A stretch of DNA of 64,000 bases from Malacoraja senta. Its lineage: Eukaryota. The DNA lies in the NCBI GenBank assembly GCA_038087875.1, contig JAXLNO010000106.1, forward strand, positions 1 through 64,000, in the 5' to 3' direction. Shown piece after piece: positions 3,911-64,000 of the stretch (the stretch's first letter is position 1; every line of letters starts with the position of its first letter). The position numbers and the translations under genes are program-made. The notes below the pieces were generated by a model, which searched no databases, had not been told where the DNA came from, and saw only the letters and a list, made by a program, of their open reading frames with translations.

Positions 3911-4119
3911 ACCTTTGAGTCCGGGTAAGTATTGTTTGGCAAATTTCAGACACTTCAGTAATGGGTGACTTATTGTAACAATGCGGAGGATGGTCTCCAG
4001 GAGGACAGGTTGGTGGATGAAATACATCTGATCATGGAATTAGTACTGGGTTGCTAGTTTTTCTCACTTGATGCTGCAATTCAATGTATCACCACTAAAT
4101 ATTTACACTTTCCTTTCAG

Positions 4120-4430
4120 TCAATACGGAAGACGTGGATGGAATTCTGGGTTCATCAGTTTTACTGGATCCCAAAGTTAAAGGTGACGACAGGAAGAAGG
4201 ACATTATTTGGGAGTTCATTTCATCCCTGTCTATGGAAGTGCTATCACCATTTTGCATCATATCCCAGGTGTGTGGTTGGAGGAACCAAGTGATCATTTC
4301 AAGTCCCGATTACAGTATACTCCTTCTAATGCCTCTTTAATGGTAAAAGGATTAGGACACGGAGACCAAGGAGAATACAGACTCACAATCAATGACCAAG
4401 TGGTGAAAATCATACAGTTGTACCTCTTTG
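4120..4430 (+). pseudogene. Gene A exon: N-terminal IgV-like domain of CD2/SLAM/CEACAM type (no Cys), with an apparent 1-bp frameshift near 4210-4240
   Basis: Acceptor tttcctttcAG|, donor TTTG|GTGAGT. One frame reads VNTEDVDGILGSSVLLDPKVKGDDRKKDIIWEF; another reads ITILHHIPGVWLEEPSDHFKSRLQYTPSNASLMVKGLGHGDQGEYRLTI (FxxRL..NASL..DxGxY motif). Length is 311 bp, one short of a phase 1-1 exon. Confidence 0.85.
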
Positions 4431-4650
4431 GTGAGTAGTTTCACTTGTTTATGATGCACATAAACGTGGCAGATCCTCAGGGCCGGATTTACGTACAAGC
4501 TTGACAAGCTTAAGCTTAGGGCCTCGAGATCTAGGGGGGCCTCGCAGAGCTGGATTTATCACTAGGCTTCATAGGCTGAAGCCTAGGGCCTCGAAATCTA
4601 GGGGGCCTCTGGCCAAGGCAGGACACCTGCCGTTCAACTCTGAGCGGGTC

Positions 4651-9470: not shown

Positions 9471-12400
9471 TAACGGCCTTTCCTGCCGGAGACCGGCCAG
9501 AGCTTCAGCAGCGGCGCAGCACTGAATTCCATCGCGGAGCGGGCGATGCTTTACCGGGGATCACCGTGTTGGAGCTCCGGAGGGCCTGCCGACTTTAACA
9601 CTGTGGAGCTGTGGTCTGTGAAGCGTCCAACCGCGGACGGCGCTGACTTTAACATCGCAGAGGCCTGGGATCATTTGCCGAGGAACGCCAGTGTTGGAGC
9701 TCCGCCCAGCTTGGCCTGTGGACTTCGGAAGCTGCGGTCTCCGGTAAGAAGCGGCCGATTCGGAACTCCAAGCCGCTGAGAGTGTTCTTCCATTCTGACA
9801 CCGGTGCTTCGATCATCTCGGCGAGAGGGCCTGAACAGTAGCGGCGACTGCGGAGGGCTCAATAGGCCCCGACCACGGGTGATGGAGATGATTGCCTTCC
9901 CTCACAGTGGGAAACGTTGATTCCGCTGTGGGGGATGTTCATGTTAAAATCTATAGTGTTGGGTTCATTTCATTTTATTTGTGTGACTGCATGGTAACTC
10001 AAATTTCACTGCACCAATTGGTGTATGTGACAATAAATGTAACTTGAATTTGACACTAAAGTAGGTAGTCTTGGAGATAATTAAGTGGTTATCAAAATTA
10101 GAGCAAGATCTTAATCAGCTGGGCAAGTGGGCTGAACAATAGCTAATGGAGATTAATGCAGATAACCATGCTGTGTTATATATTGGGAAGTCAAACCAGG
10201 GCAGGACTTTCACAATGAATGGTAGGGTCCTGGGGAGTGTTGTAAAGGACAGGGATCTAGGAGTTCAGGTACAGTTTCCTGTTGGATTAACTGGACTGTT
10301 CACAGAACAAAAATGGATGGCAGGGGAACTGATTCTTGCATTGGAAGACAAAGCATATTATCTAGAGTTGGAGAAGTCAATATTGAGTCCAGAAAGTTGC
10401 AAACTGACCAGATGGCAGATGATGTGATGTTCCTTGAACTTGTGTTGGGCCTTATTGTAACAGTGTGGAAGGTCACAGATGGAGAGGTCAAGCTTCGGGT
10501 CACTCCTGCAGACTGAGTCCAGGAGTACCAGAAAGTGATCGCTCAATCTCCATTAGGTTTCTCCAGTGTAGAGACTACGTTGCAAATACAGAATGCAGTG
10601 CACTAGATTGAGAGAAACAAGGTGAAAGGATAGGCACGGACATGTTAGGGATAGTCAGCATGGCTTGTGTGGGAAATCATGCCTCACAGGATTGATGAGG
10701 AACACACGGCAGTGGATGTTGTCCACATGGATTTAAGCAAGGCATTTGACCAGATCTCATGTGGTAGGCATGTCTAGAAGGTGAAATTGCATGGAAGCCA
10801 AGGTGAGCTAGCCAATTAGATTCAAAATTAGTTTGGAGAAAATTCAAAGTGTTGTTATGAAGGCTTGTTTTTCTAATTGGAGTCCTGTGATCAGAGGTGT
10901 GCCACGGAGGTGTGGCACAGTGGTTTGTTAAATACATTAGCAATTTGGAAGACAATGTGGTAAATTGTTAGAACATTTGCAGATTACGTAAACATTGGGG
11001 TTATACTAGACAGTAGGAAAGGATGTCTAAGTTTGCAACAAGATCCAAATCAGTTGGGATGGTGGGCAAGGAATGGCAAATTAAATGTAATTCTAACAAG
11101 TGTGAGGTATTGGTCTTTAGATTCTAGACCAGGACTTGCACAGAATGTGGTAGAGCCTGGAGAGTGCTCCAGAACAGAGATCAAGTGGATTATAAAGCTA
11201 CCTCTCAAAGATTCCTGTTGTACTGAATCGATATATAATTATTCATATCACTCCCAAAACACTAATCTCCACCAATAAACTGTGCTGCATCAGTGATGTC
11301 AAACTCATGAATGATGGGTTGAAGGGCCTGTCTCAGAGCTGTGTCTCTCCACGAATCTCAGAGAAAGATCTTTGCCGAGGAAGTCATTCTCAAAGTCCAC
11401 GGGTCATCATGGTGCAGCAGAGCCTGATGAAAGGTTGGGGGAAGAGGAGGGAGTGAGCTTGATTTTACAAGGGGAGGTGGAAACTGGACATAATCCTGCC
11501 AATTTACAGCAACATTTTGTGTTTTGTTCATTGCAAGTCATTACAGTTCAATAATCAACATTTCCCCCTTTAGCTGAGCTGACAGAAGCTTGGATATCGA
11601 CCAACTCCAGCTCCGTGGGTTCCACTATCCAGCTCACCTGTAATGTCAGTGGAGATGTTGACGAGTATCGGTGGTGGAAAGATGGAGGGGAAATCTCCCG
11701 GCATCACCAGCTAATAGATCAGAACAGGAATCTTGTGATTCCAGGAGCTTCAAGACGTGACTGTGGAACATACACCTGTGTTGCAACCAATCCCGTCAGC
11801 CGCATCCAGAAAAATTACACGCTGACTATTCACGGTGAGCTTGGTTTATGGATGACATTCACAGGTTAAATCTTGTCATCATCTGCTATTGGTGAGCTTT
11901 AGAAAGCGATCTGTCAACACTGCTGCTGAGAAAACCTGGAGGAAAATTAGACTTCAGAGAAATAATGCGACACATTCAGTCAACCTAGCCTGGTCAATCT
12001 GGTCTATGCTGGCCTAGCCTGTGAAATCCAGCCAGTCCCTCTCCTCTGCCCTTTCCCCACTGCCAGACAATGTTTCTTCCAGATACTTATCCAGCTCTCC
12101 AAATATTACAATTAAATAAATCTCCACAATGACCCCTGGTAAATCTAACCTAACCCTAACCAGCTTTGATTCTTGTGACAATTCCTCAATCTTTGTCCTG
12201 TTCATTACCCTCTCTATCTACCTGGTCCATAATAGATGTTTAAATACCTCTATTGGATCTTCTCAACTTCCTCTGTTCGAAGAACAACCTTGGCCCTCTC
12301 CAATCTGCCCACATAACCAAGACATCTCATTCCAGGAATCATTATGGTAAATCTCTCCGAATCACCCCTTCCAAAGTCTTTTTTTGTCCTAAACTCCAGC

Positions 12401-12694
12401 ATTTTGTTTCCTAAAGGTTCATCATGACTTACTTCATCTGGTGTTCTGTGCCTCCAATTATGTACCCAGGAACCTATGTGGTTTCAATGTGCTCTGCCAC
12501 TTTCAATGAATCTTATACTTGTACATTCCAGATCTGGCTGTTCTTCCCAATTCACTCTGGTTGTCATTGCATCTTATTATTCCTATCATAATGTAAGACT
12601 CCACATTGCGCTGCATTACAATTATCTGCCACGGATATGCCTATTCCAGCAGCTTGTCTACATCTTAACAGCTTTCATTATCCTGCTTTCCATT
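8064..12694 (+). repeat. Tandem segmental duplication, copy A (includes C2 exon 1)
   Basis: Collinear with 13483-18301 from atgtgctagtgagggtagg to atcctgctttccatt. Confidence 0.92.
11574..11834 (+). CDS. Gene A exon: C2/I-type Ig domain, copy 1
   Basis: Acceptor cccctttAG|, donor CACG|GTGAGC, 261 bp, phase 1-1. Reads IQLTCNVSG..YRWWKDG..LVIPGASRRDCGTYTCVATNPVS. Confidence 0.9.
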
Positions 12695-13482: not shown

Positions 13483-15758
13483 ATGTGCTAGTGAGGGTAG
13501 GAATAGGAAGGTGAATGCGTGACTGACGGGTTAGTGTAAGGGACGGGGATTCCGATTTTTAGAACATTGAGATCTCCTCTGGGGGCAGAAGTGACCTGTA
13601 CCAGGGGGATGGGTTGCACCTGAACTGGAGGGAATAAATGGCCTGGTAGGCAGGTTTGCCAGTGCTAATCGGGATCATTGAATCTAGATGGCAGGAGCTG
13701 GGATCCAAAGCAGGAGTGAGACAGGTGAAAGGCGGGAAGTTGATAGCAGGATAGACAGGAGCACAGTGGGCAGTGAGGAAGGACTGTAGAATTAACTGAT
13801 GGGGTAGGAGGATAAACTCTGCATGGATAGTACATGTGACTGGGAATTACTGTTGTTAAGGAAACCTGAGTAAGGAAGGAATAGGACTGGCAACTTAATA
13901 TTCCAGGGTACAGGTGTGGCAGGTGAGATACGGGAGGGGGAGTTACTTCACTGATTAAGGAAAATGTCACAGCAATCGTCTGAGATGACATTCCTGATGG
14001 GTTATCCAGTAAAGCTGTAGAGGTGGAGCTGAGGGAAAAATGGGGATGATCACCTCTTTGGGTGTGTACTAAAAGTCCCAAATAGTCATGGGGAATTATA
14101 AGAATAAATATGCTGGGGGACTGCAAAGCTGTTGTCAAAGTTGTGGATCTTAACTTTCCCAATGTATATTGGGACTGCCATTGTTCCAAGGACAAAGTGG
14201 AATATGCCAAATGTATTTGGCAAGTTTCCTTAGCCAATATATAGAGGGCCCTACAAGGAGTGGGCAAAGATTGGCCTACTCTTTGGAAAGGCAAGTGACT
14301 GAAGTATCAGTGATCACATGTTTTGGGACCAGCAATCACAATTCTATTAGCTTCAACATAGTTATAGATAAGGACAGGCTAATGTTGTGCCACTATTTAA
14401 GACGAGCTGCAAGGAAAAGCCTGGGAACTATAGACCAGTGGACTCAATACTTGTGGTAGGTGAATTACTGGAGAGGATTAGGTGGCTGAAACATTTTAGC
14501 ATTTGGATAGACAGAAGCTGATTAGGGATAGTCAACATGTATGAGATCGTGTCTCACGACTTTGATTGAATTTTTTGAAGTAACAAGGTTGACAAGGACA
14601 AGACTGTGGATGTTTTCTACACGGACTTCGGAAAGGCCTTTGATAAAGTTCTGCATGGTAAGCTGCTCTAGAAGGTTAGATCGTATGGCATCCATATAAA
14701 GCTAGCTGCCCCTGGATACAGAATTTGATTCATGGAAGGAAGCAGAGAATGGTGGTGGTGGATTGTTTATCAAACTACAGGCCTGTGACTAGTGGTGTGC
14801 CTCAGAGATTGGTGCAGGGCCCAATTGCTGTTCATGGTTTAAATCAACAATCAGATGAGAATGTGCAAGGCATGATTAGCAAGTTAATGGCCTTTCCTGC
14901 CGGAGACCGGCCAGAGTTTCAGCAGTGGTGCAGCAGTGAATTCCATCGCGGAGCGGGCGATGCTTTACCGGGGATCACCGTGTTGGAGCTCCGGTGGGCC
15001 TGCCGACTTTAACACTGTGGTGCTGTGGTCTGTGAAGCGTCCAACCGCGGACGGCGCTGACTTTAACATCACAGAGGCCTGGGATCTTTTGCCGAGGAAC
15101 ACCAGTGTTGGAGCTCCGCCCAGCTTGGCCTGTGGACTTCGGAGACTACGTTGCAAACACAGAATGCAGTGCACTAGATTGAGAGAAACAAGGTGAAAGG
15201 ATAGGCATGGACATGTTATGGATAGTCAGCATGGCTTGTGTGGGAAATCATGCCTCACAGGATTGATGAGGAAGACACGGCAGTGGATGTTGTCCACATG
15301 GATTTAAGCAAGGCATTTGACCAGATCTCATGTGGTAGGCATGTCTAGAAGGTGAGATTGCATGGAAGCCAAGGTGAGCTAGGCAATTGGATTCAAAATT
15401 AGTTTGGAGAACATTCAAAGTGTAGTTATGAAGGCTTGTTTTTCTAATTGGAGTCCTGTGATCAGAGGTGTGCCACAGAGGTGGGCCACAGTGGTTTGTT
15501 AAATACATTAGCAATTTGGAAGACAATGTGGTAAATTGTTAGAACATTTGCAGATTACTTCAAAATTGGGGTTATACTAGACAGTAAGAAAGGATGTCTA
15601 AGTTTGCAACAAGATCCAAATCAGTTGGGATGGTGGGCTAAGGAATGGCAAATAAATTGTAAGTTTAACAAGTGTGAGGTATTGGTCTGTAGACTCTAGA
15701 CCAGGACTTGCACAGTAAATAGTAGAGCCTGGAGAGTGCTCCAGAACAGAGATCAAGT

Positions 15759-16806
15759 TTGAAACAAGTTTATTCATGGATAACCCCTTGAGATGGACAG
15801 CCATCTCGTTTTCGAGGGGGTCCAACATAGAACATACAGCACAAGACATAACATACATAAAGGCTCTCATTGACCCACCTACCCACACACCAATCCCAAA
15901 ACCCCTCCATCCCCACTTGTTATAGTTTATAACAATTGTTAATTAGCTTTACATATCCAATAATAACAATAGTTATGTGTTACAGCATAATGTTAGTGCA
16001 CAATACCATATACCACCTATCATACATCATACGTTAATACATACTATCAACATTATTACATAATATATTATTTCATGATATTGTGACATAATACAATATA
16101 AGACCTTGTTACACTATGCAATACAATAATACATAAGTGTAATGGCCATGCATATACAATAGTTATGCCAAATGATCACACTCAGAGCAAGCTAGATAAA
16201 GGAGCTCGAAGACTCTAATACTAGAAACAGGTACATGGTTTTATAAGGAAGGGTAAAAGTGTATTTTTAAATAGACGAAATGAGCTAATAGTTCTTATGG
16301 TACTAGGCAGAGTGTTCCAGTCAGAAGGAGCTTTGTATTTAAATGCACGTCTCCCAATTTCTTTGTTAGTTCTTGGAATGAAAAAGAAGGGTTGCTGAAT
16401 ATGTCTTAGTGAATATGAGGGTGTGTATGGTAATAGGTCTTGTTTTAAATAAGAAGGGTAATTGAGGTGGATGCATTTAAAGATGAACTGGAACCAGTGG
16501 TAGCATCTTCGAGCGTGGGGGGATAACCAGTTTAGAGTTTCGTACATAGAACAGTGGTGAGTTTTTTTATGGACACCTTAAAATATATCTGCAAAGACTA
16601 TTATAAACTACATTAAGGGGTTGAAGAAGTATATCAAATGTATTCTGTTAGGCAATATCAGCATAATCCAGTGTTGGTAGTAGTAGTTGAGAGACAATTA
16701 TTTTTCTCATCTGAAAGGTGAAACAATTTATATGGCGGTAAAGAATAGATAGATTACAGCTACGTTTTTTAGTAATCGTCTCACTATGCTGCGACGATTA
16801 CTAAAT
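15759..16806 (-). mobile_element. 5'-truncated L2-clade LINE inserted only in duplicate B
   Basis: ORF 16221-16547 GRRAFKYKAPSDWNTLP..FKNTL; tail aataaacttgtttcaaacttg; aagt on both sides; empty site at about 11186 in copy A. Confidence 0.75.
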
Positions 16807-17197
16807 AAGTGGATTATAAAGCTACCTCTCAAAGATTCCTGTTGTACTGAATCGATATATAATTATTCATATCACTCCCAAAACACTAATCTCCACTAAT
16901 AAACGGTGCTGCATCAGTGATGTCAAACTCATGAATGATGGGTTGAAGGGCCTGTCTCAGAGCTGTATCTCTCCACGAATCTCAGAGAAAGATCTTTGCT
17001 GAGGAAGTTATTCTCGAAGTCCACGGGTCATCATGGTGCAGCAGAGCCTGATGAAAGGTTGGGGGAAGCGGAGGGAGTGAGCTTGATTTTCCAAGGGGAG
17101 GTGGAAACTGGAAATAATCCTGCTAATTTACAGCAACATTTTGTGTTTTGTTCATTGCAAGTGATTACAGTTCATTAATCAACATCTCCCTCTTCAG

Positions 17198-17458
17198 ATA
17201 AGCTGTTAGAAGCTTTGATATCGACCAACTCCAGCTCCCTGGGTTCCACCATCCAGCTCACCTGTAATGTCAGTGGAGATGTTGACGAGTATCAGTGGTG
17301 GAAAGATGGAGGGGAAATCTCCCGGCATCACCAGCTAATAGATCAGAACAGGAATCTTGTGATTCCAGGAGCTTCAAGACGTGACTGTGGAACATACACC
17401 TGTGTTGCAAACAATCCCCTCAGCCGCATCCAGAAAAATTACACGCTGACTATTCACG
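17198..17458 (+). CDS. Gene A exon: C2/I-type Ig domain, copy 2 (tandem duplicate)
   Basis: Acceptor ctcttcAG|, donor CACG|GTGAGC, 261 bp, open frame; about 10 nt differences from copy 1. Confidence 0.88.
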
Positions 17459-18560
17459 GTGAGCTTGGTTTATGGATGACATTCAAGAGGTTAAATGTTG
17501 TCATCATCTGCTATTGGTGAGCTTTAGAAAGCAATCTGTCAAAACTGCTGATGAGAAAACCTAGAGGAAAATTAGACTTCAGAGAAATAATGCAACACAT
17601 TCAGTCAACCTAGCCTGGTCAATCTGGTCTATGCTGGCCTAGCCTGTGAATTCCAGCCAGTCCCTCTCCTCTGCCCTTCCCCCACTGCCCGACAATATTT
17701 TTTCCAGACACTTATCCAGCTCTCCAAATGTTACAATTCAATAAATCTCCACAATGACCCCTGGTAAATCTGACCTAACCCTAACCAGCTTTGATTCTTT
17801 GTCCTCTTGTACTTTACCCTCTCTATCTACTCGGTCCATAACAGTTGTTTAAATATCTCCATTGGATCTTCTCAACTTCCTCTGTTCGAAGAACAACCTT
17901 GGCCTCTCCAATCTGCCCACATAACCAAGACATCTCATTCCAGGAATCATTATGGTAAATCTCTCCGATTCCCTCTTCCAAAGCCTTTCTTTTTGTCCTA
18001 AACTCCAGCATTTTGTTTCCCAAAGGTTCATCATGACTTACATCATCTGGTGTTCTGTGCCTCCAATTATGTACCCAGGAACCTAAGTGGTTTCAATGTG
18101 CTCTGCCACTTTCAATGAATCTTATACTTGTACATTCTAGATCTGGATGTTCTTCCCAATTCACTCTGGTTTTCATTGCCTTATTATTCCTATCATAATG
18201 TAAGACTCCACATTGCGCTGCATTACAATTATCTGCCACGGATATGCCTATTCCAGCAGCTTGTCTACATCTTAACAGCTTTTATTATCCTGCTTTCCAT
18301 TCGGCACACCTCCCAAGTTTTGTATCATCCACAACATTGGATTTGGTGCTGTGAATCACCAATAAATTATTCTGTCTCGTTGACTCATCTTGGAGGGAAC
18401 ATACAGGCCTTATGTTACAGGTTGATAAGACTGCAGGAGTTGGTACATTCACGTCTCTGCAGCAGATAGGGAAGCCGTTCACTTTCTACGGGTATTGTCA
18501 ACTTTAGCACATATTTTTCTGATGCGCTGATACATAACTCCAATTTACTTTTAATTGCAG

Positions 18561-31794: not shown

Positions 31795-31887
31795 GTTGTG
31801 ACAGCAGCCTTACAACCTGGGGAATATTTTTCACTTCAAGGATCGTGTGTGTGGTGATCTTCATCTCTCTTAGTGTGTTCCTTCACT
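31795..31887 (+). CDS. Gene A exon: extracellular loop Cys plus TM5
   Basis: tacattcctAG| ... CACT|GTAAGT, 93 bp, phase 1-1. SCDSSLTTWGIFFTSRIVCVVIFISLSVFLH; aligns without gaps to the paralog exon at 62490-62588. Confidence 0.82.
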
Positions 31888-32703
31888 GTAAGTAGCAAAA
31901 TTATCTAAGCATTCACCAGTGCCATCACTTTCAGTTAAACCATTTACTTGTGTCATTCTGTCACTTCTGTTCTGAAAGGGAGCAGTTGTCTAATCTACAG
32001 CACTTTACCAGTCTGTTGCTGGCTGGATGCTGGCATTTGGGAACAGTTCTGGGCTGGATTTTGCTGAACCTTGCTGGAAACTCTGCTTGGAGCTCCCTGT
32101 ATTTCACAGCATCATCCTGATGGCTGTTGGGACTCTTGCAGGAGCAAGGAAACCCTAAACTTCCTGGCTGAGTCTGTAGTTTCCCACACTGGTGACCCAG
32201 TGTGTGTTTGGTTTCTGAAGTAGAGCAGACCACAATGTGAACACCGAGTGCAGTACACTCAATTGGAAAAAGTGCAATTGCATCATTAAATGGGTATTTG
32301 GTGGAATAAACTTGTTGAAACCTGGAGAAACTGCAGAGGATGATCAGTTGAAACCAATGAGTGTGAGTACCAGGGACATTGTGCTCTGTCTAGGACAGAG
32401 GGTAGAAGCTGAGGTGTGGGAGGTAGAAGATATGTCAACTGTCTTGGGTCACCTGTTGCATTGATGATTGAACACTTTCACACTGTCTGATCCTGGAATC
32501 GCCCCAATCGGTTAATCAGAGGGACCATCTGCACTAAGTATTCAAGCTCAACTGTAGTAAAGACATTGTGAGTAAAATATGACACAAGGAGTAAAATATG
32601 AGTTTAGTCAATTGTAACATTTTAAAGTCCTGTGATGAGACAAGTAACCTCTGACAATATTGTGCCTTATGTCAACAATTTACAAATATTTTATTCATTC
32701 CAG

Positions 32704-32747
32704 GCAAAGATACAAGTGGGAACATCAACACTGTTAAAGGAAAGCAG
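32704..32747 (+). CDS. Gene A exon: short cytoplasmic tail exon
   Basis: ttttattcattccAG| ... GCAG|GTATTT, 44 bp, phase 1-0. CKDTSGNINTVKGKQ; homologous exon at 57252-57298 (-). Confidence 0.78.
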
Positions 32748-33117: not shown

Positions 33118-33195
33118 GATATTATAGAATTGCAACAATTGAAAACAACCACACCAGACTACACAACTGATCCTGGATCCCTGCCACCCGATTGA
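33118..33195 (+). CDS. Gene A terminal coding exon
   Basis: ctttattttAG|GAT, phase 0. DIIELQQLKTTTPDYTTDPGSLPPD*; homologous to 56627-56743 (-). Confidence 0.75.
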   Translation, partial: DIIELQQLKTTTPDYTTDPGSLPPD

Positions 33196-33737
33196 GAATG
33201 GACACAACAGCCTTCAATTTCAGATGTATTCTCAGCTCAAAGCCTTATAGAAAGATTTCTGAGGATCAATGCCTCTGTACACAAGGCTTCATGCAACTAA
33301 ATGTGTTAAGGTCTCCTCTAAGTTGGATGCACTTATGCACATGGCTGCACTTTCAAAGGTCTTTAGTGATTCGTTGTTCAACAATCTAGACCTCAACAAA
33401 ACGTTTGTACTTATTTATCACTTTAAAGCTTTGTAAACTTTAATCTTATTTAAAAATTTAGCACTTTTTACACATTTCCATAAAGTTCAGTTTAAAAAAA
33501 AAAAAAAATCACACTCCTGATTTGCTGTGGTTGATAATTCTGCAATGCGATTGGCTGTTCACATAACCAACTGCTGGGACTGGGATCTTGCTGTGCAGCC
33601 TGTTCTTTTCATATCTGCCATTCATTTGTTATTTGTACCTTTTCATACCTCTAGTTTCCCTTCTCCCCGGACTCTCAGTCTGAAGAAGGATTCAACCTGA
33701 GACCCCAGAGATGCTGCTTGACCCAGAGTTACTCCAG

Positions 33738-37996: not shown

Positions 37997-38756
37997 AGGT
38001 ATGTTACAATACTTACCTTCAGCGGCTCTGCAATTCTTCCACTGGCCGTGTGCGCGATTTTGGCGCCTTTGGGTGCGTGGGGGGGGGCGGGGTTAAAACG
38101 CGGGTTTCTCCTACCGTTAAAACGGCGACTTCTCCCGCCCGAGTTGCGGGGTTGAAGAGCACCTGGAGCGGGGCTTTATCCCCCCGCGCGGCTTGGAATG
38201 GCCACCGGACTTTGCGGGCGCGCGCCGGGGCTCTAACACCAAGACCCGGTGCGCGACCTTGCATCACCCGGCGTGGCTTTAATGGCTGCGGGACAATCAC
38301 CATCGCCCGCCGGGGGCTTTGACTTTGACTCTGACATCGGGGGGGGGGGGGAGTGCAGTGGAGAGATACGTTTTTTTGCCTTCCATCACAGCGTTGTGAT
38401 GGATGTATGTGTAAATTGTGTTGTGTCTCGGGTCTTCTTCGTTTTGTATTGTATGGCTGCAGAAACGACATTTCGTTTGGACCTCAAGGGGTCCAAATGA
38501 CAAATTTGTCCAAAAGACAAATAAATTGAATTGAAAATTGAATTGAATTGAATTGTCCTGTATTATATTTTGTTGGAGTGCAAGCTTTTGCTGAAGAGTC
38601 ATTCCGACGGGCGTTCTGTGTATTTTTTTTTTTTAATCGCCCGACAAGTTCAGTGCTGGAGTTATTTTAAAATCAGCTTCTAAAGCCGTCAACGCCGACA
38701 ACGGGGACGGATTTCACGCACGGGACAGGTAAACGAAAGCCGTTTATTTTATGTTA
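37997..38756. mobile_element. Truncated relative of the 35644-36671 element, with a nested retroelement fragment at about 38215-38560
   Basis: aggtatgttacaatacttaccttcag...ccactggccgtgtgcgcgattttggcgcc is an inverted match to 36605-36670. Confidence 0.55.
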
Positions 38757-38768
38757 AAAAGATCAAGA

Positions 38769-41700
38769 GGGGTATTATAATTTCATATCAAGCTTTTCAA
38801 AATAAAAAGAATAAGAATGAACAAAAACAGTTAGATGAACTTATTAGACAAATGGATATAGATAATGCTAAAGATCCATCAATAGATAAACAATAAAATA
38901 ATAATTTTTAAATTTAAATTAAATAAATGATTATCTGCCAAACTTATAAGACTTTTTCAAATTACAACACGAGCACTTTGAATTTGGGGATAAACCGCAT
39001 AAACCTTTGGCTCGCCAGCTAAAAAAACGAGAAAAGGAACATACTATACCAAAGATTAAATCAGATAAAGGGGAATTATTAACAACACCGAAGGATATTA
39101 ATAAAAGATTTGCGCAATTTTATGAGAATTTGTATACATCTAAAACGACAATTGATTCCAATAATATCACAAAGTTTTTGGATAATTGTAATCTTCCATA
39201 GTTAGAGTTGAAGGAACAAGAGGAATTGGGTGCACAAATTTCAATTAAGGAATTAGAAGATACAATAAACTCACTAAAGAATGGAAAAACACCAGGCCCT
39301 GATGGATTTAATAATGAATTTTATAAAAGCTTTTATGATAAAATAATACCAAGATTACAAAAAAATGTACCAATATGCTTTTAAAAAACAAATACTACCT
39401 GATACATTAGCGGAATCAACGATTACACTAATACTTAAGAAAGACAAAGATTTAGAAGAACCGGGTTCATATAGAGCTATAGCATTGTTAAACACAGATC
39501 AAAAAATATTAGCGAAAACATTAGCTAGAAGATTAAGTAAATACATTAGTAAATTAATAAACCCAGATCAGACGGGGTTTATCCCTAAGAGATATTCATC
39601 TAACAATATGAGACGGTTACTCAACATAATGCACTCACACACATCTGAAGATCAAGAATTATCAATTATTTCGCTGGATGCTGAAAAAGCATTTGATCAA
39701 GTAGAATGGAATTATATGGATAAAGTATTACAAAAATTCCAACTGGGAGAGAATTTTATCCTATGGATCAAGTTACTATATAATAAACCTACAGCTAGAA
39801 TACTAACTAATAACATATTATCCTTGAACTTCCAACTATCAAGGGGAAATAGACAAGGATGCTCATTATCACGACAGCCGTTTGCTCTCATTATTGAACC
39901 GCTAGCAGAAAAAATTAGAATACACCCTGATATCCATGGATATAATACTAAAGATTCATAAAATAAAATATCTTTATACGCGGATGATATATTACTGTAC
40001 ATTACAAAACCTCAAATCACTATACCAAATATATTAAATGTAATTGAAGACTTTGGATCTTTTTCTGGATATAGAATAAATTGGAATAAAAGTGAAATTA
40101 TGTCAATAAAACTGAAAGATTCAACACATCTTTTAAAATTCCCTTTTAAAATAGCTACAGAAAAATTTAAATACTTGGGAATCGAAATTACTAGAACATA
40201 TCAAGGTATGTTTAAGGCAAATTTTGATCCCCGACTTAATAAATTAAACACACTAATTAAATTCTGGAAAATGCTCCTGATGTCTTTAATAGGCCGAATA
40301 AATGCAATAAAAATGATCTTTCTACCACAAATTTTATACCTATTTCAATCGATTCCTATATACTTACCAAAGAAGTTTTTTTAAAAACTCGACTCAGATA
40401 TCACTAATTTTATATGGGACTATAAATCACATAGAATACAATAAACTCATCTGAATAAACCTAAAGTATTAGGGGGTTAAGCACTACCTAATTTTATGTA
40501 TTATTATTGGTCAGTAAATATTAAAAATATGATTCAACTGATGGATAATTCCGCCCAGCAAGTGGACTGGATTGTAATGGAGAAAGAGGATTGCTCCTCT
40601 GGAAACATTGGAGCGATCCTCCTCTCTCCAATGAAACTGAATAATATAAATTATAATAAGAACCCAATTATTCATAGTACAATCCGAATTTGGAAACAAA
40701 TAAAACAAAATTTAAAATTAAGAAATTTATCAATTTTATTACCCATAGTTAATAACCCTTCGTTTAATCCCTCTATTATAGATAAAGCTTTTACACATTG
40801 GGATAGACTAGGAATTAAAACGTTCGGTGACTTGTATGAAACTGGAAAATTACTTTCATTTCAACAATTACAAATAAAATATAAACTCGGAAATAATCAA
40901 TATTTTAAATATTTTCAAATATGCGACTATTTGAAAAAATATACAAAAGATCATTATAATAACCCAGCAGATGTATTGGATGAGGCAATGCAGATAAAAG
41001 CTGAATCAGCAAACTTAATATCATATTTGTATAATATTATCTTAAATGTACAAATACCATCTACGGAGGGTATCAGAAGAGACTGGGAACAAGAGTTAGC
41101 TATTAAAATTTCAAAGGAAAGTTGGAATGAACACTTATTAAACGTGCATAAATGTTCGATTAATGGAAGACACACTTTAATACAATTTAAAATTTTACAT
41201 AGATTATATTATTCCAAAACTAAAATTCATAAAATTTTCCCAAATGTATCATCTATTTGTGATAAATGTCAATCCCAAGAAGCTACTATAGCGCACTCAT
41301 TCATTTTCTGTACAAAAATTCAAAAATTTTGGAATTAAATTTTCAAAATCTTTACAAAATTATTTAAAATAAAACTGATACCCAAAGCAGAATGGATTAT
41401 CTTCGGAATAACGGAAGATGGTCCAGAACTAAATGTGTTTCAAAAGAAACTAATAGACTATGGGTTAATAACTGGGGAAAAGCTAATCCTAAAATTTTGG
41501 AAGGCTCCAATACCAACTATAAACATGTGGATTTCAAATATGTTCGAAACATTACACCTAGAAGAGATAAGACTCCTCCTAGCAGGTAAACCAGATCACT
41601 TCCACCTGACGTGGTCTGCATTTATAGAATTATTACAAATATAGGGTGCAAAGGTACCTGAAAAAAATTGAGGTCAGGTAATGGGGGATGATAGTTGAAG

Positions 41701-42099: not shown

Positions 42100-43419
42100 C
42101 CTTGTTCAATGCGTACCAGGGCCCCATCCCCGACCTCTACCTCCGCTACATCGATGATTGTTTGGTGCCACATCCTGCACCCACACACAACTGACTGACT
42201 TCATCTGCTTCACCACCAACTTCCATCCGGCACTCAAATACACCTGGACCATTTCCGACACTTCCCTACCATTCCTTGACCTCACTATCTCCATCGCAGG
42301 TGATAGACATCTTACCGACATCCACTACAAACCTACCGACTCCCATGGCTATCTGGACTACACTTCTTCCCAACCTGCTTCCTGTAAGGACTCCATCCCC
42401 CACTCCCAATTCCTCCGTCTACGCCGCATCTGCTCCCAGGATGAGGCGTTCCACACCAGGGCATCTGAAATGTCCTCATTCTTCAGGGAACGGGGGTTCC
42501 CCTCCTCCACCATAGATGAGGCTCGCACCAGGGTCTCTGCCATACCCCGCAACACTGCTCTCTCTCCCCATCCCCCCACTCACAACAAGGGCAGAGTTCC
42601 CCTAGTCCTCACCTTTCACCCCACCAGCTGTCACATACAACAAGTGATCCTCCGTCAGTTTCGCCACCTCCAACATGACCCCACCACTCGCCACATCTTC
42701 CCATCTCCCCCCATGTCTGCCTTCCGCAAAGACCGCTCCCTCCGTAACTCCCTTGTCAATTCTTCCCTTCCCTCCCATACCACCCCCTCCCCTGGTACTT
42801 TCCCTTGCAACCGCAAGAGATGCAACACTTGTCCCTTCACCTCCCCCCTCTACTCCATTCAGGGACCTAAGCAGTCGTTCCAGGTGCGACAGAGGTTCAC
42901 CTGCATCTCCTCCAACCTCATCTATTGCATCCGCTGCTCTAGATGCCAGCTGATCTACATCGGTGAGACCAAGCGGAGGCTTGGCGATCGTTTCGCCGAA
43001 CACCTCCGGTCGGTCCGCAATAACCAACCTGACCTCCCGGTGGCTCAGCACTTCAACTCCCCCTCCCATTCCGTATCTGACCTCTCTGTCCTGGGTCTCC
43101 TCCATGGCCACAGCGAGCAACACTGTAAATTGGAGGAAATGCACCTCATATTCCGCTTGGGCAGTCTACATCCTGGGGGCTTGAACATTGAATTCTCCCA
43201 ATTCTGCTAGCCCTTGCTGTCCCCTCCCCTTCATCAGCCATCTGGTTGTCTCCTCCCCTCCCCCAGCCCTCGGGCTCCTCCTCCGCCTTTTTCCTTTTTT
43301 ACTTTCTTCTCCCCACCCCCTATCAGTCTGAAGAAGGGTTTCGGCCCGAAACGTTACCTATTTCCTTCGCTCCATAGATGCTGCTGCACCCGCTGAGTTT
43401 CTCCAGCATTTTTGTGTAC
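42100..43419 (+). mobile_element. Penelope-like element: C-terminal RT plus GIY-YIG ORF (42158-43210) and pLTR
   Basis: YLRYIDD, LPFLDL, CNRKRCNTC, IYCIRC..YIGETKR; 14-bp direct repeat caccaagaatcaat at 42086-42099 and 43420-43433. Confidence 0.93.
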
Positions 43420-56072: not shown

Positions 56073-56626
56073 ATTAACACAACAACCAAAAAAGCACACC
56101 AACACCTTTACCTCCTTAGTAGGCTTAGGAAATTTGGCATGTCCCCTACAACTCTCACCAACTTCTACATATGCACCATAGAGGCCAGCAGCGTAACCAA
56201 GGACAAGTCGCACCCTGGCCAACTACCTCTTCTCCCCTCTCCCATCAGACAAAAGGTATAGATTAAGTATGAAAACACACACCACCAGATTCAGGGACAG
56301 TTTCTTCCCTGCAGTTATCAGGCAACTGAATCATCCTACCACAACCAGAGAGCAGTGCTGAACTGCTATCTACTTCATTGGTGACCCTCGGAATATCCTT
56401 GATAGGACTTTGCTGGCTTTACCTTGCACTAAACCATATTCCCTTATCATGTATCTATACACTGTAAATGGTTCGATTGTAATCATGTATTGTCCATCTG
56501 CTGACTGGTTAGCATGTAACAAAAGCTTGTCACTGTACCTCAGTGAGCGTGACAATAAACTAAATTAAACTAAACTGAACCGGAGGGAAGATTTTCCAGG
56601 CCACATCAGGAACACAGTAGCTGCCC

Positions 56627-56743
56627 TCACAGTGACATCTGAAACCGAAGGCTGTCGGGGTTTCTCTGATCCTGCTGAAGGTTTTGGGGTCCCGCTTCAT
56701 GATCTGGTCTGATAGTTTGTAATTCTTGCAATTCTCCATTATC
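56627..56743 (-). CDS. Gene B terminal coding exon
   Basis: tttattctAG|GAT. DNGELQELQTIRPDHEAGPQNLQQDQRNPDSLRFQMSL*; similar at the nucleotide level to 33118-33230. Confidence 0.75.
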   Translation of the reverse strand, partial: DNGELQELQTIRPDHEAGPQNLQQDQRNPDSLRFQMSL

Positions 56744-57251
56744 CTAGAATAAACAGAATCCATTTGTTATTTGAATGGCAAATCTTCACATTCAAACTAC
56801 AGAGATAAGGGCAGGACAAGACAGGCAGGGGGGAAAGAACATGGAGAGAGGGTGTAGTAGAGGTACAAACGGGACAGAACAAATGATGCAAAGGGAGACA
56901 AACAAAGAGGCCACAGCCTGCAGAACCAGATCCAGACTGGGAGAGACAGTGAATGTCCACATGTTGCATGGAGAACATGTCCAGACATGGCCGTAAATAA
57001 AGTACTGAGAGAAACTGAACACTACATTAAATCCCACCAGATACTGTATCATGTACATTAACAGAGGCTAAGATTCCCTCTGGGTTATGTGTGTCAATGT
57101 CTGTCAGACCGTGGTGATATAAATATAGTAGCAGATTTTGATGAATGTGTACGTGCATGAGAGCAAGAGGAAGGGGAAGATATCAGTAGATTTATAAACT
57201 CATTAAACAATCCTCTACAGAATTCAACAGAACGTTATCTTAACAAAATAC

Positions 57252-57298
57252 CTGTTTTCTTTCTGCACAGCTGTCTCTGTTAGTTACTTCATGTCTGC
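57252..57298 (-). CDS. Gene B exon: short cytoplasmic tail exon
   Basis: ttttattcattatAG|GC ... ACAG|GTATTTTG, 47 bp, phase 1-0. SRHEVTNRDSCAERKQ; splice contexts nearly identical to gene A 32704-32747. Confidence 0.78.
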
Positions 57299-58300
57299 CT
57301 ATAATGAATAAAAGAACCTTTCACAACTCTGCACACATACACAATATTGTCAGATTATTTATGGCTCATTCTAGTCTCTAAACAGTAGCAACTCACCCTT
57401 GCTCTTTCACTTTAACCAATATCAGTGCATCCAGGTGTGTTTGAACAGTAAGTGCAGAGTCGGTATCTCTGGGTAACCGACTAGAAGGTGCAGGATCAGA
57501 CCTTGGGAAACGGTTAACCGATCAATGAGTGAATCGCTTTACCTACAGGGCCCTAAAGGTCACTTCCTGAGGACAATCACACAGAGCAAATCAGGAACTT
57601 CTGCATCCCCGGCCTGAGACAGTCCCCTGGGCTCGGAGAGCATGGAGACTGGATAAAGGCTCCCAACCTGCACCAGGAGCCGGGTCAGGAAATCTGCCTT
57701 CTCACTGCTCGTCTTTCCCATGAGGTCAATCATCTCATTCCCATTCCCTTCATTATTCCCTGTACCCTTGCTCCAGGCAGAGCCTCATCAATCCAACAGG
57801 AGGGCAATCAAGCAGCAAATCATTGGCCAATTCCCCACATCTGCTCCCATTGACCAAGGTTCCCTTCACCAGCCATCCTGAGAATGTGTGGAAACCCAAA
57901 TTTACTCTTGTCACAAGCGGGATGACAGATGAAAGATGTCCGTCAGCTCATTGATCTAATCCCAGAACCCCATCCCTGCCATCCCCCCACTGGAGCATCC
58001 AGCTGTTCCTTCCAATAACCCAGGGCTGGGTCTCCCCCATCCATCCCCTCCTGGGAAAGGTTCCAACCACTGATTGGCCTCCATGGGATGGAAAACCTAT
58101 GTTTTCTCTTTGTGGCTCAAACATGCCCCTCAAACGACTGCTCCCGTCTCTCTGCCTGCAGGATTGCTGGAATTTCCAGATAGGAAATGACAAGGCCCAT
58201 CAACCTGTTTCAATCATCCCCGCTGTCTGATGTTCTAGTGATGACAGAGACCAGATTTTCCCAAATGGGGTCCCCGCCTGCACTCACCACTCTTCCAGAC

Positions 58301-58934
58301 CAGGCACGTGCCAACAGGGTAGGCAAGGTAGGCAGTGCCTACCCTGACTAAAATTATAAAAAGGTAATTATTAAATATAAGTAGTAAAGATTTCCAATTC
58401 ATTTACTATTGGCAACTTAATGCACGAAATTACATGCATAATTTATAAAATGGTTATTATTTTCATGATTTCATCGATCTCTAAGGTAGGCATAATTCTC
58501 CCGTGCCTCTAATCCGCAGTACATGTAATACGTGAAACTATGTGCAACTCATGTGCCATGGATGCTACTTCAAGCCTTCACTTACAGCGGACAATAAAGG
58601 CAGCTGAAATTCTGCCTTTGCACCGTGGACTGCACGCATGTGTGCTGCGCAGCCTGCGCGCAAGGTGTTGCGCACGTGTTCATCTTCCGCCTGTTTTCTT
58701 GGCGGATTTTTCAAACAAAGTGAAGAATGGAGTTTGTGTACAAATAATGTGGTAAGTACATTTTCTGTTTTTAAAATATTTTATTAAGAGATAAGGCTTT
58801 TGAAGACAAATTACTTTAAATAAGTCGACTGACTGCCTACTGGAGAGGAGACCAATCTGCGCATGCGCGGTTTTTCAGATTTTTAAAAGTCGACTGACTG
58901 CCTACGCTGAGTAATTACTCATGGCACATGCCTG
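58301..58934. mobile_element. hAT-type MITE in a gene B intron
   Basis: TIRs CAGGCACGTGCCA / TGGCACATGCCTG; 8-bp TSD ttccagac / ctccagac (7 of 8 match). Confidence 0.8.
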
Positions 58935-59195
58935 CTCCAGACGTACCCTCTTCGGATCAGGAACACCAATCCTGATGCCCGACAGTCCCGGAGCAGAGGC
59001 ACAAGGCTTTGGATTGGGTGATGTAGGCCTTCTGGAGCAAGACCCACATACAAACACCTCTGGAAACCTCAGGCATCCACAGCCCTCACCCAATGACAGA
59101 CATTACAACTATTAACTTTGAAATAAACGTGATCAAAATGAAAATATTTAAATTATTCGAAACTAAAATGATTAAAATATATAGTTTATTCCACC

Positions 59196-60726
59196 GTACA
59201 CAAAAATGATGGAGAAACTCAGCGGGTGCAGCAGCATCTGTGGAGCGAAGGAAATAGGCAACGTTTCGGGCCGAAACCATTCTTCAGACTTATAGGGGAT
59301 GGGGAGAAGAAAGAAAAAAAGGCAGAGGAGGAGCCCGAGGGCTAAGGGATGGGAGGAGACAACCAGAGGGCTGAGGAAGGGGAGGAGACAGCAAGGGCTA
59401 GCAAAATTGGGAGAATTCAATGTTCATGCCCCCAGGATGTAGACTGCCCAAGCTGAATACGAGGTGCATTTCCTCCAATTTCCGGTGTTGCTCGCTGTGG
59501 CCCTGGAGGAGACCCAGGACAGAGAGGTCAGATACGGAATGGGAGGGGGAGTTGAAGTGCTGAGCCACCGGGAGGTCAGGTTGGTTATTGCGGACCGACC
59601 GGAGGTGTTCGGCGAAACGATCGCCAAGCCTCCGCTTGGTCTCACCGATGTAGATCAGATGACATCTAGAGCAGCGGATGCAATAGATGAGGTTGGAGGA
59701 GATGCAGGTGAACCTCTGTCGCACCTGGAATGATTGCTTGGGTCCTTGAATGGAGTCGAGGGGGGAGGTGAAGGGACAAGTGTTGCATCTCTTGCGGTTG
59801 CAAGGGAAAGTACACGGGGAGGGGGTGGTACGGGAGGGAAGGGAAGAATTGACAAGGGAGTTACGGAGGGAGCGGTCTTTGCGGAAGGCAGACATGGGGG
59901 GAGATGGGAAGATGTGGCGAGTGGTGGGGTCACGTTGGAGGTGCGAAACTGACGGAGGATGACTTGTATGTGACGGCTGGTGGGGTGAAAGGTGAGGACT
60001 AGGGGGACTCTGCCCTTGCTGTGAGTGGGGGGATGGGGAGAGAGAGCAGTGTTGCGGGGTATGGCAGAGACCCTGGTGCGAGCCTCATCTATGGTGGAGG
60101 AGGCGAACCCCTGTTCCCTGAAGAATGAGGACATTTCGGATGCCCTGGTGTGGAACGCCTCATCCTGGGAGCAGATGCGGCGTAGACGGAGGAATTGGGA
60201 GTGGGGGATGGAGCCCTTACAGGAAGCAGGGTGGGAAGAAGTGTAGTCCAGATAGCCATGGGAGTCAGTAGGTTTGTAGTGGATGTCGGTAAGATGTCTA
60301 TCACCTGCGATGGAGATAGTGAGGTCAAGGAATGGTTGGGAAGTGTCGGAAATGGTCCAGGTGTATTTTGAGTGCCAACTCCTCCCCTTCCTCAGCCCTC
60401 TGGTTGTCTCCTCCCCTTCCTCAGCCCTCTGGTTGTCTCCTCCCCTTCCTCAGCCCTCTGGTTGTCTCCTCCCCTTCCTCAGCCCTCTGGTTGTCTCCTC
60501 CCATCTCCTCCCCTTCCTCAGCCCTCTGGTTGTCTCCTCCCATCCCTTAGCCCTCGGGCTCCTCCTCCGCCATTTTTCCTTTCTTCACACCCCCTATCAG
60601 TCTGAAGAAGGGTTTCGCCCGAAACGTTGCCTATTTCCTTCGCTCCATAGATGCTGCTGCACCCGCTGAGTTTCTCCAGCATTTTTGTGTACCTTCGATT
60701 TTCCAGCATCTGCAGTTCCTTCTTTA
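59196..60726 (-). mobile_element. Penelope-like element with an inverted pLTR at its 5' side
   Basis: RT C-terminus and GIY-YIG on - (59398-60370); inverted pLTR on + (60380-60726); 15-bp TSD atagtttattccacc at 59181-59195 and 60727-60741. Confidence 0.92.
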
Positions 60727-60959
60727 ATAGTTTATTCCACCACCTTGGCACAGAGTCTGAGAGCAGATTCCTCAACCAGGAAAGCTCAGTTAGTTTCTGC
60801 TCCACCTGTATTTCCATGCATAGTGCAGCAGCCATGCAATGGGGAATTCAGCCAGAAAGTTCAAGGATATTGACATTGCATGGCCTATCATGTTTACTGA
60901 CCACCCAGCCATCAAAGGGATTCACAGAAGGTGTTGCCTCTAAAAAAAACTAATATTCA

Positions 60960-61885
60960 AAGATATATATAAATGACTTGGATGTATTTGTAGACAGTTT
61001 GGTTGGAAAGTCTGCAGATGACACCATGGTCATGGAGTGTGAGGAAGGCCATCACGGATTCTGAGGAAAGTATACAGCGGGATGTAGGCCAGGTACAGAA
61101 AATGGCAGATGGAGTTTAATCTGTGCGTGATGTGTTGCATTTTGGGAGGTCAAATGTAAGGGCAAAATATAATTAATGGCATGATCCGTAGCAGCTTTGA
61201 TGTACAGGGGGTCTTGGGGGTCTACGTCCACAACTCCTTAAAAGTGGTAACACAAGTAGATAGAGGGGTAAGGAAGTCATGTGGTATGCTTGCCTTCATT
61301 GGTCAGGGTATTGAACATGAGAGTCAGGAGGTCATGTTGAAGCTTTATAGCATCTTGGTTAGGCTGCAATTGGAGTATTGCGTGCAGTTGTGGTCACCCC
61401 ATTACAGAAAGGATGTGGAGACTTTGGAAAGGGTGCAGAGGAGGATTACCAGAATGATGCTTGGATTGGAGGGTATTAGCTACAGGGAGAGGTTGGAGGG
61501 ACTTGGCTTGCTTTCCCTGGACAGCTGGAGGTTGCAGGGAGACGTGTTAGAAGCATATGAATTGATAGGGTATAGTCAGAACTTTTTTTGACAGGATGGA
61601 AATATCAAATACTAGAGGGCTTTAAGGTGAAGGGGGCATAGTTTAAAGGAAATATTCTGGGCAAGTTATTTTTAACAAAGAGGTTGGTGAGTATCTGGAA
61701 TGCGTCTGGATGGTGCTGCAGACAAGATACAATAGTGGCAATAATGAGACTTTGGACAAGCACATTGATATACAGGGACTGGAGGTATATGGACTATGTG
61801 CAAGCAGATATGGGTTGGTCCTGGCATCTTGATCGGCATAGACATTGTGAGCCGAAGGGCTTATTCCTGTGCTGTAGTGTTCTAC
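60960..61885 (+). mobile_element. Decayed CR1 3' fragment
   Basis: LYSILVRLQLEYCVQLWSPHYRKDVETLERVQRR. Confidence 0.85.
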
Positions 61886-62489
61886 ATTCTATCCACACCG
61901 GCTGGGCCATACTCTCATCTCGGTGCTACCATCAGGAAGAAGGTATAGGAACATGAAAACCATGATCTCCATGTTCAAAAACAACTTCCTCCCAGCAACC
62001 ATCAGGCTCTTGAATACTGCACAACACTAATCACTGCCTCAGCAACAATAATCTACCTGGACTTTGTTTTGGTTGCACCATTTCGGCATTACACTATTAT
62101 GATCAGGTATTATTGATTATTAAATTATTGTTTTATTGATTATAGTATACTTACTTGTGTATTTTCCATTAATGGCCGGTAAAGCTGCAGCAAGTAAGGA
62201 TTTAATTGTTCCATTGCAGTACATATGGCAAATAAACACTCTCAACTTGATCTCTATATTCCAGACGAATCCTGACCCCCACTGGCATTTGTGCTGGAAA
62301 TATCAGCAGCCAAGAGTGGAATTTCCAGCAGGACCTAGCAAATTCCAGGCTGGAGCAGTTCCTGAATGCCGACAGACAGTCAGGGACAGACTGGGAATAA
62401 GCTGGAGGTTTCCCCATAACTGCTGTTTTGAAGGCAAGACCAGGGGGGAGACCATATTCTTTAGAAAATGCCTGTATTTTGAGACTTAC

Positions 62490-62588
62490 TTTGGCAAACC
62501 GGGAAGGACCTGGATAATGCTATCACACATGTGACCATTGATACAATGGGTATGATCCAGATGGGAATGTTGGTGTCACAGTCTTGAT
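62490..62588 (-). CDS. Gene B (paralog) exon: loop Cys plus TM5
   Basis: On the - strand, tatatttcAG| ... CAAA|GTAAGT, 99 bp, phase 1-1. QDCDTNIPIWIIPIVSMVTCVIALSRSFPVCQ shares CD.....W.I...S...CV with gene A TM5. Confidence 0.8.
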
Positions 62589-62849
62589 CTGAAATATATA
62601 ACAGTACACACAACAAGTAAATTCACAAGTTGCCCCACACCTGCTCAACATTTTAACTGCACATGTCCATTAGCACTTTCTGGAACAGCATTGTTAAATA
62701 GTATCTGACACAAAGCAATGAGTTAATAAAAGTGTGGTGGACAATTTTATCCCTGATAAATCAGTTATTAATCAAACAATGTGATTTTTAAAAACCATAA
62801 TAAACATTAGATGGACAATAAACTTCACTTAGCCACTTCCAACTTTGCA

Positions 62850-64000
62850 CATAGAAACATAGAAACATAGAAAATAGGTGCAGGAGTAGGCCATTCGGCC
62901 CTTCGAGTATGATCATTCAATATGATCATGGCTGATCATCCAACTCGGTATCCTGTACCTGCCTACTCTCCATACCCCCTGATCCCTTTAGCCACAAGGG
63001 CCACATCTCCCTCTTAAATATAGCCAATGAACTGGCCTCAACTACATTCTGTGGCAGAGAATTCCAGAGATTCACCACTCTCTGTGTAAAAAATGTTTTT
63101 CTCATCTCAGTCCTAAAAGATTTCCCCTTTATCCTTAAACTGTGACCCCTTGTTCTGGACTTCCCCAACATCGGGAACAATCTTCCTGCATCTAGCGTGT
63201 CCAACCCCTTAAGAATTTTGTAAGTTTCTATAAGATCCCCCTCAATCTTCTAAATTCTAGCGAGTACAAGCCGCGTCTATCCAGTCTTTCTTCATATGAA
63301 AGTCCTGACATCCCAGGAATCAATCTGGTGAACCTTCTCTGTACTCCCTCTATGGCAAGAATGTCCTTCCTCAGATTAGTAGACCAAAACTGTACGCAAT
63401 ACTCCATGTGTGGTCTCACCAGGACCCTGTACAACTGCAGTAGAACCTCCCTGCTCCTATACTCAAATCCTTTTGCTATGAATGCTAACATACCATTCGC
63501 TTTCTTCACTGCCTGCTGCACCTGCATGCCTACTTTCAATGACTGGTGTACCATGACACCCAGGTCTCGTTGCATCTCCCCTTTTCCTAATCGGCCACCA
63601 TTCAGGTAATAGTCTACTTTCCTGTTTTTGCCACCAAAGTGGATAACCTCACATTTATCCACATTATACTGCATCTGCCATGCATTTGCCCACTCACCCA
63701 GCCTATCCAAGTCATCTTGCAGCCTCCTAGCACCCTCCTCACAGCTAACACTGCCCCCCAGCTTCGTGTCATCCACAAACTTGGAGATGTTGCATTCAAT
63801 TCCCTCATCCAAATCAATATATATTGTAAATAGCTGGGGTCCCAGCACTGAGCCTTGCGGTACCCCACTAGTCACTGCCTGCCATTCTGAAAAGGACCCG
63901 TTTATCCTACTCTTTGCTTCCTGTCTGCCAGCCAGTTCTCTATCCATATGAACCCCCAATACCGTGTGCTTTAAGTTTGTATATTAATCTCTTATGTGAG
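62850..64000 (-). mobile_element. CR1 LINE RT and 3' end
   Basis: SGVPQGSVLGP, FVDD, LYRVLVRPHMEYCVQFW; (atagaaac)n tail at 62850-62875. Confidence 0.93.

Follow-up and report, generated by a model that had tools for sequence, protein, structure and literature searches.

The 3' end of a probable long-form gene in a skate locus and the clustered family of predicted immunoglobulin-domain, multi-pass membrane proteins to which it belongs

A 64,000-nt stretch of the Malacoraja senta contig JAXLNO010000106.1 (hereafter the window, to which all coordinates refer) contains, at positions 56627-62588 of the minus strand, what are very probably the three final coding exons of a gene that is live and transcribed. 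This gene, gene B, would belong to the long-form branch of a family of shark and ray proteins, a second member of which, gene A, lies on the plus strand of the same window. As judged from the sequences, gene A would be a short form with five passes, orthologous to Amblyraja radiata LOC116990216. The proteins of the family are predicted to carry CD2/SLAM-like V domains lacking the usual disulfide and one I-set domain in which an additional cysteine is invariant; these are followed by membrane helices, odd in number, and by a short, acidic cytoplasmic tail. From the exon at 62588-62490, gene B would obtain the last helix together with an outward-facing Cys-x6-Trp; the tail, with GE(L/M)QELQT..P(D/G)H, would come from the two small exons that follow, and the upstream exons would have to lie beyond position 64000. 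For gene B we infer an 11-pass topology with an extracellular cysteine; a role of the family in cell-surface recognition or adhesion is putative. The visible parts of gene B, in the order of transcription, are:

62588-62490, minus strand: last-transmembrane (TM) exon, 99 nt, entered in phase 1 and left in phase 1, encoding (x)QDCDTNIPIWIIPIVSMVTCVIALSRSFPVCQ(S)
57299-62489, minus strand: intron of 5191 bp, enlarged by transposon pieces
57298-57252, minus strand: small cytoplasmic-tail exon, 47 nt, entered in phase 1 and left in phase 0, encoding (S)RHEVTNRDSCAERKQ
56744-57251, minus strand: intron of 508 bp between the tail exon and the terminal exon
56743-56627, minus strand: terminal coding exon, encoding DNGELQELQTIRPDHEAGPQNLQQDQRNPDSLRFQMSL, with the stop codon at 56627-56629

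All three exon frames are open and the splice sites are canonical. With slashes marking the exon limits, the last-TM exon lies in the context ttcag/AT CAA GAC TGT GAC ... CAA A/gtaagt, the small tail exon in tatag/GC AGA CAT ... AAA CAG/gtattt, and the terminal exon in ttctag/GAT AAT GGA ... CTG TGA, from which the 3' untranslated region (UTR) extends below 56627. In translation, the last-TM exon carries its Cys-x6-Trp (CDTNIPIW) just outside the last helix, and the 54-residue tail has no tyrosine at all and hence no immunoreceptor tyrosine-based inhibitory, switch or activation motif (ITIM, ITSM or ITAM).

These exon limits are matched by assembled transcripts. Sequencing runs were chosen by the presence of the terminal exon of gene B, used instead of the whole 6-kb stretch, which as a query gave mostly transposon words, and were then aligned to 56595-62594. 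Contigs from the Logan assemblies of two such runs, X5 and X11, both typed 'RNA?' and coming from two different organisms, cover 62590-62489, the small tail exon, and 56742-56603. Their joints at 57297/62489 and 56742/57251 skip 5191 and 508 nt, respectively, with CT..AC ends that correspond to GT..AG on the minus strand, and coincide with the splice sites predicted for gene B. The X11 contig (584 nt, depth 198) continues for 169 nt 3' of position 56603; at its other end it holds 126 nt 5' of the first visible exon, which enter through a proper acceptor and are absent from the whole window. The introns have no depth in X5 and X11 except in their transposon parts; a further run, X20, covers them continuously and is most likely genomic DNA. 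Thus, the joints together with the 126 nt of upstream sequence indicate that the three exons are used as predicted and are spliced to something upstream. The first-pass annotation, made from the letters of the window, had placed the rest of gene B beyond position 64000, and this fits both the upstream end of the contig and the outcome of tblastn searches with 25 long forms over 33.2-64 kb, which detected no upstream exon of gene B on the minus strand and nothing else convincing beyond the two larger exons.

The assignment of gene B to the long-form branch comes from its 87-residue C-terminus, which is 55-63% identical to more than 25 long forms over 70-84 residues, in matches that take in the small tail exon and end within a few residues of the C-terminus of each long-form protein. 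The best of these is P0208 (Mobula hypostoma LOC134346684), with 58% identity over 84 residues (E = 6.5e-29 against the family set); the short forms reach 41% at most, and the gene A ortholog 34%. At the level of individual exons, all 25 long forms searched by tblastn match both larger exons of gene B, the last-TM exon with E values down to 4e-10, and P0208 matches the terminal exon with 54% identity over 35 residues (E = 7e-6). A maximum-likelihood tree of the last helix and tail (72 columns, 51 rows), a region so short that only the coarse placement is to be trusted, puts gene B within sets of 20 and 23 rows that consist nearly entirely of long forms (support 99/84 and 99/88), where it groups with stingray and manta proteins. 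Gene A pairs in the same tree with P0082 of Amblyraja (100/99), inside a short-form clade (98/86). The split between the two genes thus predates the separation of skates and stingrays, and the view of gene B as a true, old paralog of gene A is borne out. The ray long forms in the clade of gene B (P0208; Hypanus sabinus LOC132394520 and LOC132394515, i.e., P0170 and P0209; and entries from Hemitrygon akajei and Mobula birostris) share with it the Cys-x6-Trp, LSRSFPVC, and, at the extreme C-terminus, GE(L/M)QELQT..P(D/G)H. They differ in being automatic predictions of whole proteins, whereas gene B is known from its last three exons. Gene A and Amblyraja LOC116990216, in contrast, fall in a different clade from gene B and are short forms. 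Gene B does not, then, mirror the five-pass gene A; it belongs to the long-form subfamily, in which two to three V domains and a single I-set domain are joined to about 11 helices. The helix labeled TM5 in the earlier reading would then be the last of about 11, and its forecast of "TM4-TM1 and Ig exons" upstream understates what is to be expected there. The description of the family as fast-evolving is likewise doubtful for the last-TM exon and tail of gene B, in view of their identity to the stingray proteins, and the immune-receptor role suggested along with it is putative.

The family itself was delineated by word-based protein searches, in which P0151 returned 36 proteins and P0159 returned 66. 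Nearly all of these matches come from rays, skates, sawfish, and sharks, the few weakest being CEACAM proteins of bony fishes and snakes, and by this measure the family appears to be restricted to sharks and rays. Nearly all of its members are named "uncharacterized" or have been automatically and mistakenly labeled contactin-6-like, HEPACAM2-like, or CEACAM1-like, and the literature searched holds no description of the family. That it is a clustered multigene family, as had been surmised from the two genes of the window, is apparent from the presence of at least 10 loci on one 19.9-Mb chromosome of Pristis and from runs of consecutive LOC numbers in Hypanus; at the Pristis locus, the only neighbor seen beside a family gene is on the same strand. 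Two architectures recur. The short form combines single V and I-set domains with what a crude hydropathy count gives as five helices. In the long form, of 650-1040 residues, two to three V domains free of cysteine accompany a single I-set domain that contains DCGxYxC, and an equally crude count gives about 11 hydrophobic segments; the Pfam 2B4 family is listed for many of its members. The membrane module of the short form can be aligned to the long-form membrane region in two or three registers, a pattern suggesting that the latter may have arisen by internal duplication of the former. Among the positions that are invariant across 20 aligned short forms are the two canonical I-set cysteines, the extra cysteine of the DCG motif, and the cysteine before the last helix; the tryptophan of Cys-x6-Trp, at the start of the last helix seven residues after that cysteine, is at least 90% conserved. 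Since the number of helices is odd, the cysteine before the last helix would face outward and the tail inward. By analogy with CD47, a disulfide between this cysteine and that of the DCG motif would tie the membrane-proximal immunoglobulin (Ig) domain to the membrane domain.

Comparisons of structure and profile bear on the ectodomain and the membrane region separately. A Foldseek search of the PDB with the AlphaFold2 model of a short form returned only V-C2 ectodomains, such as those of CAR, JAM-A, LAG-3, CEACAM1, and B7. For the membrane region, Pfam scans of single TM exons gave no match, and a word-based search with the short-form region matched only its own isoform.

The two genes of the window resemble each other at their 3' ends, for which the counterparts in gene A are:

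31795-31887, plus strand: TM5 exon of gene A, counterpart of the last-TM exon of gene B
32704-32747, plus strand: small tail exon of gene A, counterpart of the tail exon of gene B, located from the sequence
33118-33195, plus strand: terminal coding exon of gene A, counterpart of the terminal exon of gene B, located from the sequence

The genes are convergent, tail to tail, with their stop codons 23.4 kb apart, and the last three exons agree in order and in intron phases (1/1/0). This correspondence in order, phase, and splice context was the central observation of the first-pass annotation, and it is exact, down to the peptides quoted: CDTNIPIW... at 62512-62580 on the minus strand faces CDSSLTTW... 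at 31797-31865 on the plus strand, DNGELQELQT at 56714-56743 (minus) faces DIIELQQLKT at 33118-33147 (plus), and both tail exons end in ...AARCAG/GTATTTTG, i.e., KQ/GTATTT. The concatenated C-termini (70 residues of gene A and 86 of gene B) align locally with a BLOSUM62 score of 89; shuffled sequences score 22.4±4.1, and 0 of 5000 shuffles reached the observed value. The last-TM pair alone scores 46 (1 of 5000 shuffles) and the terminal pair 51 (0 of 5000); the 15-residue middle pair by itself is not significant (10, against 10.2 for shuffles). In a six-frame tblastn comparison across the whole window, the matching exons are each other's best non-self matches, with E values of 0.015 and 0.002. 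Protein identity is about 31% (22 of 71 aligned residues), at which synonymous sites are saturated over these ~70 codons and the ratio of nonsynonymous to synonymous substitution rates is meaningless. The convergent arrangement may stem equally from an original inverted duplication, as had been suggested, or from a later rearrangement.

The similarity extends into DNA that is not coding in both genes. By blastn, 56703-56788 and 33158-33075 are 77% identical (E = 2e-9), in an alignment that includes ~45 nt of the intron before the acceptor. The TGA stop of gene A falls where gene B reads CAG, and gene A thereby ends 12 codons earlier; about 40 nt beyond that stop, in the 3' UTR (33193-33240), align to the coding tail ACAGCCTTC..TTTCAGATGT of gene B. 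The same likeness after the stop is present in the Amblyraja ortholog of gene A (~78895-78945 of that locus, L001). Two blocks in the introns of gene B also have counterparts in introns of gene A:

62319-62410, minus strand: intron block 1, ~80 nt downstream of the last-TM exon of gene B, 70.7% identical to the gene A intron at 31992-32083
57432-57527, minus strand: intron block 2, ~135-230 nt upstream of the tail exon of gene B, 69.4% identical to positions 572-667 of the gene A intron (32459-32554)

Block 1 is absent from the X5 and X11 transcript contigs, and the gene A intron block also matches an intron of a Pristis paralog (L002, 44870-45051). Patches of ~70% identity are unexpected between paralogs of this age. 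They and the UTR patch could be constrained, as flanks of alternative tail exons or as regulatory elements, or could reflect slow neutral decay. Several annotated isoforms of the family differ exactly at the tail exons. Among the stingray short forms P0161, P0164, P0165, and P0169, some isoforms have 19 additional residues, SLGTGLAFNIWRRYIQRND, inserted where the tail follows the last helix, an indication that the intron with the conserved blocks also contains an alternative cassette exon.

These patches of 70-77% identity, together with the position of the genes as convergent neighbors, are what would favor a recent origin of gene B, by inverted duplication of the 3' end of gene A or by gene conversion from it. 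We consider this very unlikely, because gene B is 55-63% identical to the long forms of stingrays and mantas as against ~31% to gene A, and the tree separates the two genes with a support of 99/88. Moreover, the shared UTR stretch occurs in the Amblyraja ortholog of gene A and so predates the split of the two skates, and the gene A intron block recurs in the Pristis paralog, so that the patches are not the product of recent conversion. Substitution rates in cartilaginous fishes are generally reported as slow, and with such rates an identity of ~70% in unconstrained DNA would fit an old split. A chance likeness of hydrophobic, low-complexity reading frames has a negligible probability: although single exon pairs attain only E values of 0.002-0.015 at the scale of the window and the middle pair is not significant, chance would have to produce at once the collinear order, strand, and phases, the similarity of intron DNA, the spliced transcripts, and the strong matches to the whole family.

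More serious is the question of whether the three exons are the relic of a 3' gene end that is transcribed into a non-coding or chimeric RNA. The stretch from 33.2 to 64 kb has no upstream family exon, the adjoining introns abound in transposon pieces, and gene A has a frameshift (described below) that shows decay at the locus. Yet all three frames are open with canonical sites, and CxxxxxxW, LSRSFPVC, and GELQELQT have been kept relative to the stingray proteins, which argues for purifying selection, and the transcript contigs run upstream through a proper acceptor. A relic is on this evidence improbable, and a live long-form gene, cut by the end of the window, remains the far better account of gene B. 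Certain points nonetheless weigh against this account. Gene B is visible in the window by its 3' end alone, its Ig exons and upstream helices being outside the view. The organisms behind X5 and X11 differ from the window by a few bases and their runs are typed only 'RNA?', so that they speak only indirectly for expression in Malacoraja senta itself. The long-form architecture is drawn from automatic gene predictions in other species. Finally, the AlphaFold2 models of the membrane part are of low confidence for both forms: that of the long form has 11 long helices, in line with the hydropathy count, at a predicted local distance difference test score (pLDDT) of 48, and that of the short form has good Ig domains with a poor membrane part (pLDDT 40-60), such that topology and disulfide remain putative.

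Mobile elements are prominent around gene B. A piece of a Penelope-like retroelement with a GIY-YIG endonuclease domain (Pfam) lies at ~59196-60376 on the minus strand, inside the 5.2-kb intron, and is 95% identical by blastn to a copy at 42229-43419 on the plus strand. Fragments of non-LTR (long terminal repeat) reverse transcriptases, recognized by the Pfam models RVT_1 and zf-RVT, are located at 63231-63983 on the minus strand, in the intron upstream of the first visible exon, and at 38684-41641 on the plus strand.

Upstream of the three exons given above, tblastn with P0151 located the remainder of gene A as follows:

4119-4435, plus strand: V exon
11576-11860 and 17197-17460, plus strand: I-set exon matches
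18.5, 21.2, 27.2, 27.4, and 31.8 kb, plus strand: the five TM exons

The two small tail exons fall below the tblastn threshold with P0151 and were assigned from the sequence itself. The closest protein to gene A is the product of Amblyraja radiata LOC116990216 (P0082, P0151), annotated as "uncharacterized". The C-terminus of gene A shares 75% identity with P0082 and 57% with a short form of Pristis, as against at most 34% with long forms. For the I-set exon, the search for representatives was dominated by giant multi-Ig proteins, and the useful high-identity matches were only P0082, P0143, P0128, and P0144. The window and the Amblyraja locus are collinear, with 80-92% DNA identity including the introns, and the window thus holds the orthologous locus of another skate; the comparison covers that locus and a 10-kb flank, which ends ~21 kb short of the expected position of gene B. 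The paralog had been cited as support for the model of gene A, and the exon limits of that model indeed hold. The V exon, though, carries a 5-bp tandem insertion (TTCAT TTCAT) at 4215-4224 relative to the Amblyraja ortholog, which shifts the frame in the middle of the domain; this could mean that gene A is a pseudogene in the animal sequenced, or else that the assembly is slightly in error at this point. A block of ~5 kb with the I-set exon is also present twice in tandem, at 8189-12694 and 13608-18487, both copies mapping to a single Amblyraja stretch (L001, 23777-34271), and reflects an exon duplication peculiar to this lineage or else an artefact of assembly.

For annotators, the 3' end of gene B now has exact exon limits with splice evidence. 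At the skate locus, members of two branches of the family that separated long ago are neighbors, and the family, greatly expanded in rays, is at present hidden under automatic names that are uninformative or misleading. As an independent family of five-pass and ~11-pass proteins with a candidate disulfide between Ig and membrane domains and a tyrosine-free tail, it offers a target for both comparative immunologists and membrane-protein biologists.

Among known systems, CD47 invites comparison. It consists of a single CD47-type IgV domain, five helices, and a short tail from tiny exons, with a disulfide linking the Ig and membrane domains, and apart from it we know of no Ig-domain proteins built on multi-pass membrane domains other than those of the seven-transmembrane type. 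The likeness of CD47 and its poxvirus counterparts to the present family is one of architecture only: an Ig ectodomain, a multi-pass domain, a short tail encoded by very small exons, and, ahead of the last helix, an outward-facing cysteine through which the Ig and membrane domains could be linked. The differences are that the ectodomain of the family is of the V+C2 kind typical of CD2/SLAM, CAR, and JAM rather than a single CD47-type V domain, and that proteins of the gene B type have ~11 helices rather than five. The Pfam CD47 model (PF04549) had no match at E values up to 1 in four short forms and 19 long-form membrane regions, and when the PDB sequence set was searched with profiles of the short- and long-form membrane regions, no CD47 chain was retrieved at E values up to 10. 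Kinship in sequence with CD47 was rejected because of these negative searches; in an Atlas comparison of the long-form membrane region by protein language model, the CD47/OPG166 poxvirus cluster came first, at 0.68, but shuffled sequences often scored higher.

With the CD2/SLAM receptors, and 2B4 in particular, the family shares a cysteine-free, membrane-distal V domain followed by a C2/I-set domain, although the match to the Pfam Receptor_2B4 model is weak (E = 0.0015, below the cut-off). Those receptors are single-pass or glycosylphosphatidylinositol-anchored, with tyrosine switch motifs, TxYxx(V/I), in the tail. The proteins of the present family, in contrast, are multi-pass by prediction, and the tail of gene B, as translated, is free of tyrosine and of the immune signaling motifs built on it. 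It is conceivable, and we offer it tentatively, that the long form is a new kind of membrane protein, in which CD2/SLAM-like Ig domains are tethered by a disulfide to an 11-helix domain duplicated from a five-helix module and lacking relatives in Pfam and among solved structures, and which, along with the five-pass forms, multiplied in rays and skates into clusters amounting to dozens of genes. A family of this kind might serve a lineage-specific recognition of self and non-self or of cell contacts, acting, as CD47 does, through the membrane domain rather than through tyrosines of the tail.

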